DNA from: Phaeosaccion multiseriatum
Taxonomy: Eukaryota; Protista; Ochrophyta, other classes
DNA length: 64,000 nucleotides
Direction of reading: 5' to 3'
Assembly: GCA_965112735.1 (NCBI GenBank)
Contig: OZ218952.1
Location: 2,046,001-2,110,000 of the forward strand
Below are positions 21,532 to 29,286 of the stretch, piece by piece. The notes beneath the pieces are model-generated. The model worked only from the letters and a program-made list of their open reading frames with translations, made no database searches and was not told where the DNA came from. Each line of letters starts with the position of its first letter. Positions within the stretch are counted from its first letter, which is position 1. Both the position numbers and the translations under genes were made by a program.

Positions 21532-24500
21532 TCAATGGCCCAGCAGCTTCTGCACCAGGCTCTGCCTGCTCTCCTCCTCCTCAACCATGAGAGCCTCCCC
21601 CACCACCACCACGCTCACCCCATCCACCGAGGCCACTTCCTGCACATCGGCGGGGGTGGAGAGCCCACCCTCTGCGATGATGACGGGGGGTTTGTCCATT
21701 GAGGCGAGCTTGGCCTGGACAGAAGGGTCAGACAGGATGCGCGATACACGGCCCTTGTCCACAGTCCAAGTGGCGAGGTTACGGCAGGAGACACTCACCT
21801 GTGGAGAGGAGGAGATGAGAGAGTGAGTGGGAGGGGAGGCGGTTAAAGGGGGGTGCAGAGGGAGGAGGAGGAGGAGGAGGAGGAGGAGGAGGAGGAGGAG
21901 GGGGGTTGAGGGGGAGGAAGAGGATTCAGAAGAGGGGGAGGGGGAGGGGGGAGGGGGGAACCTCTCAGTTTCAGTGTCAATTTTCAATCAGTGTGAAAGA
22001 AGAGCCATCCAACCGAGCGCGCTATCGTGTTGAAGTGGGTGGGTTGGGTCCATGAAACTGAAACTCACCATCTCCACATCGGCCAGGTCTAGGGCCAGCA
22101 GCATCTGAGGCACAGAGCAAACCGTTACCACCGCCTGTGGGGTGGATGGCAGTGGATGGGGGGAAGGGAGGAGTGGGTGGTCAGAGAGGGAATACAAGCA
22201 CCAACACGCGGGCATATGGGCACAGAGTCAGAGAGAGAGGGAGAGGGAGAGAGAGGGAGAGAGCAGGGAGAGAGGGAGAGGGAGAGAGGGAGAGAGAGCG
22301 AGAGCCGGGAGAGAGAGAGGGAGAGAGAACGTGTGCGAGACTCCCTTGCTCTCCGCAGACAACACCAACACTAGCAGGCACACCCACTCACCCACCCACC
22401 TACCCACCCACACACATGCACACACACACATACGCACACACATACACGCACACATACACACGCACATGCACGCACGCACACACACACATACACACGCACG
22501 CACGCACCTGCAGGCCCACGGCCTTTGCGATTTTGTGAAAGTAGATGAGATCCTTCGGGGGCAGGCCCGGCACAATGAGCTTCACCGCATCCGCCCCTGC
22601 CAATCGAGCCTAAAGGCGTATAGGCAAAGAGAGACAGAGGGAGGAGAGAGGGAGGGAGGGGGGAGAAGAGGGTAAGTGAGAGAGGGAGGGAGGGAGGGAA
22701 AAGTCCTTTCCCTACCCTATACCCTATACTCCATACCCGACTGTACGCCCCCCACCGTATACCCCATACCCTATACCCTATACCCTATACCCCCTACCCC
22801 ATATCCCATATCCTATACCCCATACCCCATACCCTACTCTACATCCTATACCCGACACTCCATGCTCTATACACCATACCCTATACCCCATACCCTACTC
22901 TACACCCTATACCCGACACTTCATGCCCCACACCCCATGCCACTCAATACCCTATACCCCATGCCCCATACCCCATACCCCATACCCCGTACCCCACACC
23001 CTATACCCCATACCCCATACCCGTATACCCCTATACCCCATACCCCTATACCCCCATACCCCTATACCCCATACCCTATACCCGAACATCCATACATCCA
23101 TATACCCATATACCTATATTCCCATATACCTGGTAGATTTGGTAGGGATAGACCACCATATCGCTGCTGAGCACAGGGGCGGTGGTGCCCTCCTTGGCGT
23201 CCGTCAGGTCATCAAGAATGCCCCCAAAGAAGGAGCGGTCAGTGCATACAAAGAAGGCAGCCGCTGCAGGGGAGAGGGTGTTGGTCAGGGCGGTGGGTTT
23301 GTAACCGTCCTCCTCGAAGAGAGGCCCGCTGAGGGGGGCTGAGCATTTGATCTGGGGGAGGGAGAGGGAGGAGGGAGAGGGAGGGGAGGAGGAGGAGGAG
23401 GAGGAGGAGGAGGAGGAGGAGGAGGAGGAGGAGGAGGCGGAGAAAGAGGGGGGGGGGGGGGCAATCGAAAAGGAGAGGATTCAATCAGAGGCGACTTACA
23501 GAGATAAGAGGGTACCGCCCAAACAGCGCACCCCTGCCTGCCTCCTCGGGACACTTCTCTTCTGTTCCTCACCTCGGCTATGAGTGCCAGTTTGTTGGCC
23601 GACTTGTCCACCGCTTGCCTCAACGCCCCCACGAAGTCTCTGGGGGCGAGGGCGGGGTCCATAGCGAAGGCTTTAACCTGCGAAGGGGAGGGGAAGGGAG
23701 GGGAGGGGAGGAGTGGAGGGAAGGGTAGGAGAGGCGGAGGAAAGCCAGTAAGTAGCATTGAGAGTATGTAAGCGAGAGAAGAGGGAGGGAGGGAAGTGAA
23801 GCAAGCCTGCACACCCACCCACGCACCCACTTACCTTGCTCACGAGCATGGCGAGTGGCTTGGCGTCCCTCTGCCTGTCCACCTCCTTCTCCTTTTGCCA
23901 CACCCAAGCCTCCAGGCGGTTAGAGGGCTGCCTCATCTTCTCCGCGACAGAGTACTCCACAGGTCCTGGTAGGATAAGGGATGGCAGTGGACGGCGGTGG
24001 ATGGGAGGCGGGGGATGGCAGTGTGTGTGTGAGGGAGAGAGAGAGGTAGATGTAGAGAGAGGTAGAGGTAGAGAGGGAAAGAGAGAGGGAGAGAGGGAGG
24101 GAGAGAGGGAGGTAGAGGTAGAGAGGGAAAGAGAGAGGGAGAGAGAGAGCACACACACAGACAGGTAGAGGTAGAATGCACACACACATTGAGAGAGAGA
24201 GGAAGAGGTAGAGAGAGGGGGAGGCGGTCTGCGAGGCAAATGCCAAGCCGGTGAAGCCTTCTCTTCCCCCTTCCCTTCCCTCCCCTTCCCACCCACTGCC
24301 ATCCACTGCCATCCACTGCCATCCATGCTGTCCGTACCTGTATTGAGGGTGCGCCCCGCCTGCAAGTCCCTTCTGCGGATCTCAAAGTTGGGATCGTCAT
24401 CCGAAACCGTCCGGTCCTCATCATCATCGTCATCATCCACACCCACCCCCTCGCCTCCTCCCCCTTCAGAGGCACCCTCACCCCCCTCCCCAACCCCACC

Positions 24501-26884
24501 CCTCCCCTTGTTGAGTGCGTAGGCCGTGCTGGAAACCATCGCCTCCCGTGACTTAGGTGAGAGCACCATGAATCCCGTGCTGCTGCCGAGAACAGCGGTG
24601 GGTGTGCCTCGGCGCAGCTGCCCAATGGCTCCGTTGGAGAAGAAACCGCCGATGGGTAAGCTCGTGGTGGAGGCGAATTTGGAGGCTTCGTGGTTCTCAC
24701 GTTCGAACAGGGTGAAACCGCGGTCGAAGCTGGGGTAGATGAGGCACCCAACCGGCTGTTGAGTGATCGGGGTGGGGTGGGGTGGGGTGGGGGGGTGGAG
24801 GAAGAGAAGAAATGGGAGGTCTCTGAATCCCCAAGCCGTGTTGTGGCCCTTTTCGTTCCTTCCTTATACAGTGTGGCCATTGACTTCGAGCTCACTCACC
24901 ACAGCATCACAACACACAGTCCGAGTCGAGTCGAGTTCGTGGGTACCTCTCCAGCCACTCCCTCACTCTCTCCCTCCCTCCCTCACTCACTCACTCACTC
25001 ACTCACTCACTCACCCACTCACTCTTCTCTTCTTCGCTCTCTCCCTCCTCTCTCCCTTCACTCACCTGAAAGGGGGCATCCTCCCCCTCCTTCTCCGCCT
25101 CCTCCCTCCCCTCTCTGTACTCGTCCAGTGTGTCATTGAGCTCTTTCTCTGCACTTTCTCTATTGCGCACAAAGAAGCGCACCCTCTGTCCGTTTCCGAG
25201 TTTGGATCCGAGTGTGCAAGCACCCGTCTTCATGTTAGAGCGGGAGATGGATTGCACCTGTCGTTGACATACAGAAGGGACCGAGGAAGGGGGTGAGAGT
25301 GAGTGTGAGTGTGAGTGTGTGTACACTCCACACCTACACCTACACATACACACACACGAACAGACACTGAGGCAGGGGGAGAGGGAAGAGCAGTGAGTGA
25401 GCGTGTTCCTACTTCCTCCACGCACTCACACACACCCTCACACTCACTGACTTACCAGGAACCGCCTGCTGTCCTCCAAGGAGGGCGTGCTTGTGCTGTC
25501 GGGGTCCTTCATGCCCGCCATGCGCTTCTTGTCCTCCAAGTTGGAGCCGTAGCCGCTCTGGGTATACGGGGTATATGGTAGGGTAGGGTATAGGGCATAG
25601 GGTAAGCGAGGGTAGGGTAGGGTAGGGTAGGGAAGGGGAGGGTGGGATAGGGTAGGGTAGGGTAGGGTAGGGTAGGGTAGGGTGGGGTAGGGTAGGGTAG
25701 GGTAGGGTGGGGTAGGGTAGGGTAGGGTAGGGTAGGGTAGGGTAGGATGGGGTAGGGTAGGGTAGGGTAGGGTAGGGTGGGGTAGGGTAGGGTACGGAAG
25801 TGGAGGCTAGGGCATACGGTAGGGTAGACAGCGATGGATGGATGAAGCGGGGCAAAACCAGCGGCGAAAGCACTACCCCCCACCCCCCCCTCCTCCCCCT
25901 CTCTCCCTCTCTCCCCCCCTCCACCCTCCACCCCACCACCTCACCGTCAAAGGCTCTATCCCCAGCAATGTGCCGCTCTGCATCTTACGACTGGCATTGG
26001 GCGGCAGTTGCCTCTGGATGAGCTTGGCCGCTGCAAGGGGGGGCATCACAGGCTGGAGCTTGTCCTCCTGACGGCCCCCTACGGCAGCGATGGGCGACAC
26101 CGCCTGTGTATGTGTGTGCGCAGGAGGAGGTGTTGGCAAGTGACAGTTTCATCAGTTTCAGGGTATGAATTACTCCGTCACTTGCAGGGTCCATCGACAC
26201 TATACACTATCGAGCACATGGAATAGCCTCATCTCACTCACTCCCTCACCTGCAGGGTCTGGTCCTCGAACTTCTCCACTGAGAAGAGCGGCCCAACTGC
26301 CGCGGCCCCCTGACTGAAGGCCGTCTTGGCAGCGATGTCGCCAAGGAGGGCCACCCCGACCAGCCCCTGTACAAGTGGGTGCATACGTGGGTGTGTGCGT
26401 GTGGTGTGTGTGTATGTGGCGTGTGTGTATGGCAAATGTGTGTGTGGAGGGATTGTGAAGCTGGGTGGGTGGGTATGGGTGGGTGTGTGCGTGCGGCCGT
26501 GTGTGTCTGTACGTGTGTATGTACCGCCACCCCCCCGCCTGAACAGGAAGAATACCCCCTAGCGAAGAGAAACCCCCCTAACGAGGAGTCACTCAGTAAC
26601 CCCCCTAACGAGGAGTCACTCAGTAACCCCCACCCCACCCACCTCTCCGTACACCACGGGGTTGGACACGGGTCCGTCGAGGTCTTCATCGATACCCGCA
26701 AACACCTTCGGACAAGCACGACACACAGTGAGAGTTTCCGTTTCAGTTGAGTAAGCCTTGCTTCCTTCCTTCTTCAATGCCATTGGCAAGACATGGCAGA
26801 GCCTTCGAGAGACATCGGTGGACCTCTTTGGCGTACTGCTAAATCAATTGGAAGAACGAGCCATCGGTCGATACGCCATACGTC

Positions 26885-26921
<37 letters not shown>

Positions 26922-29286
26922 ACGCACACACACTCAACACACACACCTGCGGACGGGTGAGGCTGCTCACAGTGCTCGAAATGGCGCCAAACTTCGTGCT
27001 GCGGTGGGTGCGTGCGTGGGGATGGGATGGCAGCGGAAGGGCACGAGATGGTAGTGGATGGGGAGGGAGCGGTTAGAGCCACACGGTATAGAGTGGCGGG
27101 TCGGGGAGGGGGTGCCGTTCAGGGCAGGGCTGCTGACACAGAAGAGAGGGAGAGGCGTCCACATCTACCTACCCTCTTTTCTCATCTCCTCCTCCTCCTC
27201 CTCCTCCTCCTCCTCCTCCTCCTCCTCCTCCTCTGCCTCCTCCTCCTCCCCCTCCTCCTCCTCATCTCACTCACTCGTTTCGATACTGGCAGGCACCCTC
27301 CCCTTCCCCTTTTTCCAAACAAAGGAACGGGTGCCATCGTACCACGCCTCCCAACGACACATTGGCCTCTTGTCAAAGCCCCCTGACTGCCCCAAAAAAA
27401 CGTTTCGTCACGATGTATCCTAACACGTAAGTACTACTACGTAAGTACCTATCTGGGAAGGCCCTGTCCAAGTTGGCCATGTAGTCAACAAGGCAACCCA
27501 TGAAGGTGGCGGTGGGGTACAGTAACAGCACGGAGGGGTCCTCTGAAACGAGTTCGCGCCCGAGCACCTGGTGGTGGGGGAAGAGGGGGAGGATGATGAT
27601 GATGATGATGGGGAGGAGGAGTAGGAGGAGGTGGTGGTGGTGGAGGAGGAGTAGGAGGAGGAGGATAATGATGATGATGATGAAGAGGAGGAGGATAATG
27701 ATGATGATGATGAAGAGGAGGAGGAAAATGATGATGATGATGACGATGATGAGGATGAGGAGGTGGTGGTGGAGGAGGAGGATATGATGATGAGGAGGAG
27801 GAGGATGAGGATGATGATGATGATGATAATGATACGGTGATGATGATGAGAAGGAAAAGGAAGATGATGATGATGAGGATGAGGATGAGGGGATCCTCCG
27901 CTTCTGGGCTTGCCTCGCCAACCCTTTCTCTCCTTCCCATCGGTTGCCATCCCCCTCCATTCTTCCTTCCCTCTTCTCTCCTCGACAAAAAAAACCGCTC
28001 CCCACCCCCTTTCTGCTCCTTCCCCCCCCCCCGGTATGCAACGTGATTACGATATAATGCCTGGTCCTGCATTCCACCTGATATCATCTTTCTTCTAAAT
28101 CCATGCCTTATCCAATGCCTTACGCATCCCCTGCCATACGCCTACCATATGCCTCATCTACGTCTTCCTTACTCCTAATCTTACCTCGACCTAGCCCCTA
28201 ACACTCACGTACCTACTTACGTACCTGTCTCCTAATGTCATCAACGGAGTCGTCGAGCTCCGGCAGATCGAACCCGTCCGTGCCCACCGTGAAGGGCTTG
28301 ACAGTGACTCCGGGGAGCGAAGCGAAGGTCACGCTGAGGCCCGCTTGGTTCTCCACCTCCACGCCTTTCCCCCTCCTCATGCCCACCACGCCGGACCCCG
28401 TGCTGCCCATCACGTAGCGGAGACCAGGTAGCCTGTTGGTTGGGTGTGTTGTGGGTGTGTTGGGTGTATGTGTGTTTGCATGGTGTCACAGACGGCAGGA
28501 TGGTGGGTGGCATAGATACATACAGATGAGAGGGTGGGCGCGCACACACACACCCGAAGAGAGGCCAACCAATCCAACGTCAGGGCGGAGCTGGATCCGA
28601 TGGATCTGTATATAGTTAGTTCACTGCTTTGCAAAGTGTTGTGTTGGCAAAGCATCCCCACAGGACAGGGTCCACACGCCCGCATTCACACACCTTTCCC
28701 TGAGCTCCGTGACGACCTTGTTCAAGGACCCCTGGCTGCCGTAGATGGAGCTCACGTGCACAATGGCAAGGTCAATCTTGGGGCCCTCGCCCCCCAACCC
28801 AGCCTTGACAGCCTTCTTCGCCACTATCTCGATGGCCTCGCTGAGGTCGCCCGAGGTGGACAGGGCAGACACCCATATGTGTGGAGGGGCGAGGCCATCC
28901 GCTCCCAGAGCTGGTGTCGGAAGGGCTGATGTCGTCTCTGCCCCGTCTTCGTCCCCCTCTGCTGTAGAGGAAAGAGGTCGTCCTGGTCTGCTTGACCTCT
29001 CCATCCTCCAGGATGCAAACCCCTTCCTCAATGCGGAATGCCGCCGCGCTGGGCCTGTTGCCCATCCCCCTCGTCTTCCTTCGCCTGCTACTGCTGCTGC
29101 TGCTGCTGTTGTTGTTGTTGCTGGTGCTGCTACCCCTCCTCTATGGCAACTGGCGCTGCCTCTCCCAGCTCCGAGAGATAGCGTGAAGCCCTCCACGGTG
29201 CCATTGAGGAACGCAATCGCCGTCACCACAGTCGCTGCTGCTACTATAGTAGCGCGGCCTGGCCCCCTCCTACGTCGCTCCATCAT
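21532..29286 (-). CDS. Predicted plastid-targeted FIST (FIST_N + FIST_C) / IGPS (TrpC)-like fusion protein, probably a pseudoenzyme; 15 exons
   Basis: Phase-consistent exons 29286-28694, 28432-28225, 27567-27449, 26998-26947, 26705-26643, 26366-26250, 26103-25945, 25557-25456, 25257-25066, 24755-24338, 23965-23835, 23677-23573, 23351-23130, 22609-22508, 22134-22069 and 21798-21532 (16 coding segments as listed). FIST motifs: [91 protein letters not shown] motifs: [63 protein letters not shown]. Confidence 0.85.
22710..23128. repeat. Heptamer tandem repeat (TACCCYA)n at the donor end of a minus-strand intron
   Basis: Directly visible. Confidence 0.9.
25578..25793. repeat. (GGGTA)n pentamer array at the acceptor end of a minus-strand intron
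   Basis: Directly visible. Confidence 0.95.
27575..27890. repeat. Compound (GAT)n/(GAG)n trinucleotide array, intronic
   Basis: Directly visible. Confidence 0.9.

Follow-up and report, generated by a model that had tools for sequence, protein, structure and literature searches.

A FIST-fused indole-3-glycerol phosphate synthase barrel without the catalytic lysine and glutamate in the ochrophyte Phaeosaccion multiseriatum and its relatives

A fusion of a FIST module (COG4398) with indole-3-glycerol phosphate synthase (also called InGPS or TrpC, below IGPS) was reportedly found in Phaeodactylum tricornutum by Jiroutova et al. in 2007 (J Mol Evol); its IGPS part is said to be of inferred cyanobacterial origin, and the fusion was reportedly treated as an enzyme of the tryptophan pathway. 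Our literature searches returned nothing on the FIST-IGPS fusion, nor any mention of residue loss in it. An IGPS barrel without its catalytic residues in an organism with a secondary plastid is a kind of protein already known from PfAMR1, Vitrella and Leucomyxa. The IGPS-like proteins of apicomplexans (PfAMR1) and Vitrella, whose plastids derive from red algae, are IGPS-derived barrels in which catalytic and substrate residues are not conserved; complementation of E. coli trpC by such proteins failed, the free-living alga has a canonical IGPS beside them, and they were suggested to have a new function in the plastid (Tang et al. 2019, PMC6380595). Leucomyxa plasmidifera, a colourless ochrophyte, has a TrpC-TrpF protein with Ala at the site of the Lys that is essential in TrpC, and the authors read this protein as a plastid pseudoenzyme (PMC11528492). 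Here we analyzed a stretch of 64,000 nucleotides from Phaeosaccion multiseriatum (assembly GCA_965112735.1, contig OZ218952.1, positions 2,046,001 to 2,110,000; hereafter the window), and found that six minus-strand exons, from 23965 down to 21532, encode a complete IGPS-fold barrel fused behind FIST domains. This barrel lacks the catalytic Lys110 and Glu159, and the same sites are changed throughout an ochrophyte FIST-IGPS family to which the gene belongs.

A sequence-only reading of the window had claimed that the IGPS half lost key catalytic residues. The motifs it quoted are all present in the minus-strand translation: LALIAE and IK across the junction of exons a and b, a 16-residue stretch at 23130-23177, AVVTVCS at 22114-22134, VSVSCRNL at 21775-21798, and IAEGGL and GEALM in the last exon. 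Using phmmer against the PDB, we found that PVLSSDMVV of the window lies opposite PVLRKDFVV of the M. tuberculosis IGPS and PILCKDFII of the E. coli enzyme, which places a Ser at the position of the catalytic Lys (K119 and K114 in the chain numbering of these alignments, K110 in the S. solfataricus numbering of the sequence-only reading, used below). The same searches with the 22-aa and 34-aa exons gave noise only. Searches from the window were run with single exons or with database orthologues, and the exons were likewise placed as separate fragments in a MAFFT alignment together with 25 canonical IGPS and 13 fused relatives. In this alignment, Lys110 is replaced by Ser, Glu159 by Thr, the following His by Cys, Asn180 by Ser and Ser211 by Gly, whereas Glu51, Lys53, Arg182, Glu210, the GEAL loop and the Gly-rich phosphate loops are retained. 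The counterpart of Glu159 is E163 in the E. coli enzyme and E168 in that of M. tuberculosis.

These results bear out the proposed K110S and E159T changes, neither Lys nor Glu being restored by alignment with characterised enzymes, as well as the proposal that part of the phosphate site remains. The proposed N180C is off by one: S-C-R of the window is in register with NNR or NAR of the active enzymes, so Asn180 corresponds to Ser and the Cys to residue 181. Where IAEGGL had been read as a replacement of ESG, only Ser211 has changed, to Gly, and Glu210 is kept. The Discosporangium orthologue gave a similar picture when compared with the M. tuberculosis enzyme, with E57, K59, R191 and E219 kept and with K119 replaced by S, E168 by A and S220 by A. 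A further difference was found on strand beta4 (alignment column 222; GADAVKL in exon c, around 22583-22585), where the window has a Lys in place of the Leu that is invariant in canonical IGPS (GADAxLL). Column 222 is polar or basic in every fused member (K5 Q3 R3 N1 T1). With it, a second site of the pocket for indole and anthranilate has been consistently remodelled.

The barrel agrees with canonical IGPS in its fold, in having helix alpha0 at the N-terminus and in the motifs IAExK, TDxxFFGG, YPYQIYQAR, GADA, xRN and GEAL, and it differs, besides the substitutions above, in the Ser residues of the beta1-alpha1 loop, which are changed in the window, and in its fusion behind FIST_N and FIST_C. 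The alpha0 exon carries the family motif that begins VEYSVAEK, is 52-57% identical to the Ectocarpus, Chrysoparadoxa and Heterosigma orthologues by tblastn, and scores 60.6 bits with a hidden Markov model (HMM) of the family; exon c is 74% identical to its Ectocarpus orthologue and scores 54 bits with the family HMM versus 16 bits with the canonical HMM. Summed over the window exons, the scores were 271 bits for the family HMM versus 111 bits for the canonical IGPS HMM.

Relatives of the barrel were sought by comparing exon b with 1.84 billion representatives, which returned proteins of 520-1012 aa with a C-terminal IGPS match; by Pfam, these proteins are FIST_N, FIST_C and IGPS fusions. Word searches and cluster look-ups showed that the brown-algal members come from Discosporangium, Ectocarpus, Ascophyllum, Undaria, Nemacystus and Cladosiphon, and the other members from Chrysoparadoxa, Heterosigma, Pinguiococcus and unnamed environmental sequences. 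A word search with the open reading frame (ORF) of the last exon found no match. Full-length fused transcripts exist in relatives; one from Heterosigma is an MMETSP ORF with the label 'complete'. Of the 74 representatives that exon b matched significantly, Lys110 is absent only in FIST fusions, in one fragment of the same kind and in one TrpC-TrpF protein, which has Ala.

The comparison of the 13 fused barrels with the 25 canonical enzymes showed that the loss is family-wide. At position 110, Lys is present in 25/25 canonical sequences, whereas the fused barrels have Ser in 12 cases and Asn in one; at position 159, Glu in 25/25 contrasts with A4 V4 S2 C2 T1; at position 180, Asn in 23/25 contrasts with five N, five S and single V, Q and T, the Asn being kept within the family only by brown-algal members. 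The binding residues behave differently: Arg182 and Lys53 are found in 25/25 canonical and 13/13 fused sequences, Glu51 in 25/25 and 12/13, and Glu210 in 20/25 and 12/13. The claimed loss of catalytic residues therefore holds for the window, but it is no event of this genome, since it is ancestral to the ochrophyte FIST-IGPS family. The identity of the window protein to other members is 37-45%, and it matches 49 of the 50 near-invariant columns of the family, a result that no member surpasses when each is left out in turn; the family-specific residues present include Ser110, the W in alpha0 and DLxYFxKI. The sole member with Asn at 110 is the Ascophyllum nodosum orthologue P0091 (PVMCNDVVV), one base change away from an AGY Ser codon. 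Outside the window and the family, a 471-aa protein from a Logan assembly (P0039) is of the TrpC-TrpF type, groups with bifunctional TrpCF and has PVLCADLVV, with Ala for the catalytic Lys; with the same change as in the Leucomyxa pseudoenzyme, it may be another independent IGPS pseudoenzyme.

For the origin of the family, we used two of its motifs to scan 185,579 prokaryotic genomes and recovered almost only cyanobacterial trpC, with identity of up to 42%, reached with Symploca TrpC. All 79 of the 79 prokaryotic trpC loci with the motif, almost all of them cyanobacterial and the closest kin of the active type, read LCKDF..YPYQIY and keep the Lys, and the L(I/V)EVH motif with its Glu is kept in all 25 of those loci that were inspected for it. 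Maximum-likelihood trees unite the fused barrels in a single clade, with a support of 100 in the Shimodaira-Hasegawa-like approximate likelihood-ratio test (SH-aLRT); this clade adjoins cyanobacterial TrpC, and a branch with 99% support has both of them on one side. Window exons b and e, placed separately, both fell inside the 100%-supported set of all 13 members. Within 3 kb of 80 prokaryotic trpC genes (almost all cyanobacterial) we found no FIST gene, so the fusion is no copy of a cyanobacterial gene neighbourhood. In the simplest history, one plastid-derived copy of TrpC would have become fused to FIST, and both Lys110 and Glu159 would have disappeared from it ahead of the split between the ochrophyte classes. 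The Phaeodactylum InGPS-COG4398 fusion reportedly has this architecture and an IGPS part of inferred cyanobacterial origin, and the window gene falls in this family; the role of a pathway enzyme is argued against by the family-wide loss of the catalytic Lys and Glu. As a side result of the scan, cyanobacterial-type trpC with YPYQIY was also present in a few non-cyanobacterial metagenome-assembled genomes (L021 and L078, Chloroflexota; L025 and L071, alphaproteobacterial). One Chloroflexaceae sequence nests within the cyanobacterial part of the tree, a position that points to contamination during binning or to transfer.

Selective constraint was estimated from two Ectocarpus genomes (sp. 4 and sp. 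12; L001 and L002). The ratio of non-synonymous to synonymous substitution rates (dN/dS) was 0.21 over the whole gene (21 changes non-synonymous, 32 synonymous; p = 4e-8 versus neutrality) and 0.19 over the barrel part (6 non-synonymous and 10 synonymous changes, p = 0.0014). A dN/dS among orthologues had been set beforehand as a check of the sequence-only reading, and the value of about 0.2 for this pair is not near 1. A model of the Discosporangium barrel, built with the family alignment, reached a mean predicted local distance difference test score (pLDDT) of 88 and a predicted template-modelling score (pTM) of 0.86; against solved IGPS structures its template-modelling score (TM) was 0.82-0.92, best with ligand-bound IGPS of M. 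tuberculosis and Pseudomonas aeruginosa. A model from the Atlas was concordant and matched a cluster of cyanobacterial TrpC at TM 0.90. By these sequence comparisons, the barrel is an old domain under selective maintenance that has been repurposed, and no decaying gene.

The gene structure agrees with an intact gene. All six exons of the barrel have AG acceptors and GT donors (coordinates in Table 1); the initial two bases of the alpha0 exon finish a Gly codon opened in the upstream exon, and the other five exons (23677 to 21535) are in phase 0. Because the five internal junctions of the IGPS half continue without gaps in the orthologues by tblastn, the splice model is supported. The exons have GC contents of 0.66/0.42/0.76 at the three codon positions, a coding-type pattern, while the introns are flat and pyrimidine-rich. 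Pfam IGPS (PF00218) matches exons b, c and e colinearly (2.2e-6, profile positions 57-125; 0.24, 127-160; and 1.2e-6, 184-248), which is far beyond chance. No second IGPS was found within the 64-kb window, whose DNA is eukaryotic in character: exons are short, and introns are of the GT-AG type and rich in microsatellites. Exons b and c are separated by an intron of 520 bp (22610-23129) that is dense with short tandem repeats, and long microsatellites lie in introns of the gene at 25577-25827, 27579-27890, 23367-23442 and 26888-26946. These microsatellites are (GGTAG) x49, GGA/GAT/GAGGAT arrays of about 300 bp, (GGA) x25 and (AC) x30; their minus-strand translation resembles peptides of low complexity, by which gene calling from ORFs could be misled.

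Upstream of the barrel, the same gene encodes a signal-peptide-like N-terminus followed by FIST_N and FIST_C. Three orthologues match the window colinearly from 29286 to 21535 by tblastn, so that an orthologue of full length, with about 14 exons, lies in the window. In the orthologues, Pfam recognises FIST (PF08495), FIST_C (PF10442) and IGPS (PF00218), the IGPS part scoring 86-183 bits; single FIST-half exons of the window gave no match to Pfam FIST, because the exons are too short for the thresholds. By eye, the window protein and most full-length orthologues have a hydrophobic N-terminus followed by A/G-Phe. A hydrophobic stretch followed by A/G-Phe is the usual look of ochrophyte plastid presequences, and the protein is probably plastid-targeted. 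No PDB relative of an orthologue's FIST half was found by sequence. Using a structural model of the FIST half of orthologue P0009 (model mebbb8f42c16a), we found that the closest solved structure is human FBXO22 (Foldseek E 7.5e-11, query TM 0.48, target TM 0.58-0.66), itself a protein with FIST domains. After FBXO22 came 'Toblerone-fold' cyclic amide hydrolases (cyanuric acid hydrolase and barbiturase), with low TM of 0.22-0.31; as a weak lead, this match in the model may hint at a pocket for small ring ligands in FIST. In typical bacterial FIST proteins, FIST is accompanied by signalling output domains, and in FBXO22 by an F-box, whereas the partner in the fusion family is the IGPS-derived barrel.

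Table 1. Parts of the FIST-IGPS gene in the window, with the evidence for each and the codons of the residues discussed
Feature	Position	Strand	Evidence and residues
FIST half: signal-peptide-like N-terminus, FIST_N and FIST_C, about 8 exons	24333..29286	-	tblastn segments colinear with three orthologues
FIST-half segments, approximate boundaries	29286-28690, 28431-28240, 27546-27454, 27003-26938, 26369-26250, 26070-25951, 25257-25075, 24758-24333	-	tblastn
alpha0 exon (N-terminal helix of the IGPS-like domain)	23835..23965	-	splice sites; tblastn; family HMM
Exon a, C-terminal LALIAE	23573..23677	-	family alignment; Glu51 equivalent at 23573-23575
Exon b, from IKCSAP to the 16-residue stretch with Ser110	23130..23351	-	Pfam IGPS 2.2e-6; PDB alignments; Lys53 equivalent at 23346-23348; Ser for catalytic Lys110 at 23163-23165
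Exon c, a 13-residue stretch to AVGLQ (beta4/alpha4)	22508..22609	-	orthologue identity; family HMM
Exon d, AVVTVCS to VEM (beta5)	22069..22134	-	Thr for Glu159 at 22123-22125; Cys for His at 22117-22119
Exon e (last), coding 21535-21798 and TGA stop 21532-21534	21532..21798	-	Pfam IGPS 1.2e-6; Ser for Asn180 at 21787-21789; Arg182 at 21781-21783; Glu210 at 21670-21672

Taken as a whole, these data are best explained, with a probability that we put at about 0.5, by a plastid protein in which FIST and an IGPS-like barrel are joined, which would bind a phosphorylated ligand without IGPS turnover and would have a sensing or regulatory role. According to this explanation, the barrel descends from a cyanobacterial-type TrpC; the common ancestor of the sampled ochrophyte classes lost Lys110 (to Ser) and Glu159 (to a small residue), with purifying selection since then; and the pocket has been remodelled yet conserved, with the Gly-rich phosphate loops, the PYQIY strand and residues Glu51, Lys53, Arg182 and Glu210 still in place. 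Fold, changed residues, their spread through the family, a single origin and constraint follow from the data above, whereas lost IGPS activity, binding of a phospho-ligand, a place in the plastid and a sensing role are inferred. The barrel may then bind a phosphorylated metabolite similar to 1-(2-carboxyphenylamino)-1-deoxyribulose 5-phosphate (CdRP) or indole-3-glycerol phosphate (IGP), with no turnover by the IGPS route, and may act jointly with FIST, the small-ligand module at the N-terminus, in metabolite sensing or regulation in the plastid, while the true IGPS step would come from a separate InGPS-PRAI gene, by analogy with Ectocarpus and diatoms. The substrate and phosphate residues (Lys53, Arg182, Glu210 and the Gly loops) are retained along with PYQIY, and the acid/base sites are either fixed as Ser (110) or variable (159 and 180), a pattern that fits continued binding of a CdRP- or IGP-like phospho-metabolite.

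Several points weigh against this explanation. A recognisable effector domain, through which a putative sensor would give its output, is absent from the protein. Catalysis would explain the near-invariance of Ser110, Asp111 and the PYQIY strand no worse than binding alone. Glu51 and Lys53, both retained, were reportedly proposed by Zaccardi et al. in 2013 as acid/base residues for the dehydration step, and a partial or altered reaction through these two residues is conceivable. Of the sequence-only reading, the idea of a pseudoenzyme or ligand-binding barrel survives as one of two live readings, a new catalytic activity fitting about as well. Such an activity on another substrate or reaction, by way of Ser110/Asp111, Glu51/Lys53, Arg182 and Glu210 and with FIST as an allosteric regulator, is the chief alternative, a possibility that we hold tentatively. 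Ser110 is near-invariant and not drifting, and many of the 50 near-invariant columns lie on the catalytic face; the barrel occupies what is said to be the 'output' position, C-terminal to the FIST sensor module. For PfAMR1, which is analogous, Tang et al. (PMC6380595) suggested a biochemical function of a new kind, and in the PDB the IGPS scaffold hosts unrelated chemistries, including designed Kemp eliminases and retro-aldolases. Against it, positions 159 (A/V/S/C/T) and 180 (N/S/V/Q/T) vary, no new conserved acid/base pair is evident, and there is no candidate substrate.

That the barrel is still the working IGPS, with another residue such as the beta4 Lys (GADAxKL) as general acid, we consider improbable. 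Pfam and the source annotations name the relatives 'indole-3-glycerol phosphate synthase', the substrate-binding residues are kept, and a Lys is present at beta4 in the window and in brown algae; the beta4 residue is, however, K/Q/R/N/T across the family, which offers no conserved catalytic substitute, and Lys110 and Glu159 are missing in all members although both are present in 25/25 canonical sequences and the Lys in 79/79 prokaryotic trpC. The passage of PMC11528492 that cites Darimont 1998 calls this Lys essential for TrpC activity. Ectocarpus has an InGPS-PRAI gene plus a second 'InGPS' (PMC3942023, Table 1), and diatoms also have a separate InGPS-PRAI. Because the Lys is described as essential, IGPS-like proteins without such residues failed to complement, and Ectocarpus has InGPS-PRAI, we do not regard the fused barrel as the enzyme of the pathway; judged from its residues, it very probably forms no IGP from CdRP. 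The lost catalytic residues and the identity of only 37-45% to other members might also suggest a decaying pseudogene or a chance exon model, which we regard as scarcely credible: the frame is intact over six exons with canonical splice sites, orthologues match the whole gene, about 14 exons, in colinear order, 49/50 family-invariant residues are kept, the same substitutions occur in 13 relatives that form one clade, and the Ectocarpus dN/dS is about 0.2. Decay is refuted as far as sequence can refute it, in agreement with the earlier argument from the intact frame and splice sites.

Two of the described cases nearest to this barrel differ from it in their setting. The Leucomyxa TrpC-TrpF protein derives from the canonical InGPS-PRAI fusion, is lineage-specific, belongs to a tryptophan auxotroph and has no FIST. 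PfAMR1, which we could compare by its description only, is giant, exceeding 4669 aa (a stop at Tyr4669 is listed), and a FIST domain is not mentioned in PMC6380595; AMR1 or Vitrella sequences were not among the matches of the family searches. On a wider view, which we put forward as speculation and think unlikely in this full form, the protein would be a conserved ochrophyte plastid component unrelated to tryptophan synthesis: a CdRP/IGP sensor linking aromatic amino-acid and indole metabolism to plastid regulation, or a new enzyme, or a counterpart of AMR1, the factor for plastid biogenesis in apicomplexans. If the last were true, one ancient IGPS-derived function would be common to red-lineage complex plastids.

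Reconstructions of how diatoms and brown algae make tryptophan have assigned the IGPS step to the FIST-InGPS fusion, and in databases the relatives still bear the name of that enzyme. The family-wide loss of the catalytic residues would move the fusion out of the tryptophan pathway and defines a widespread, probably plastid, protein with a testable ligand hypothesis. It would be a second case, beside PfAMR1, of a repurposed IGPS barrel in a lineage with secondary plastids. The family may thus be useful for studying how a pseudoenzyme or a new enzyme originates from a rigidly conserved active site.

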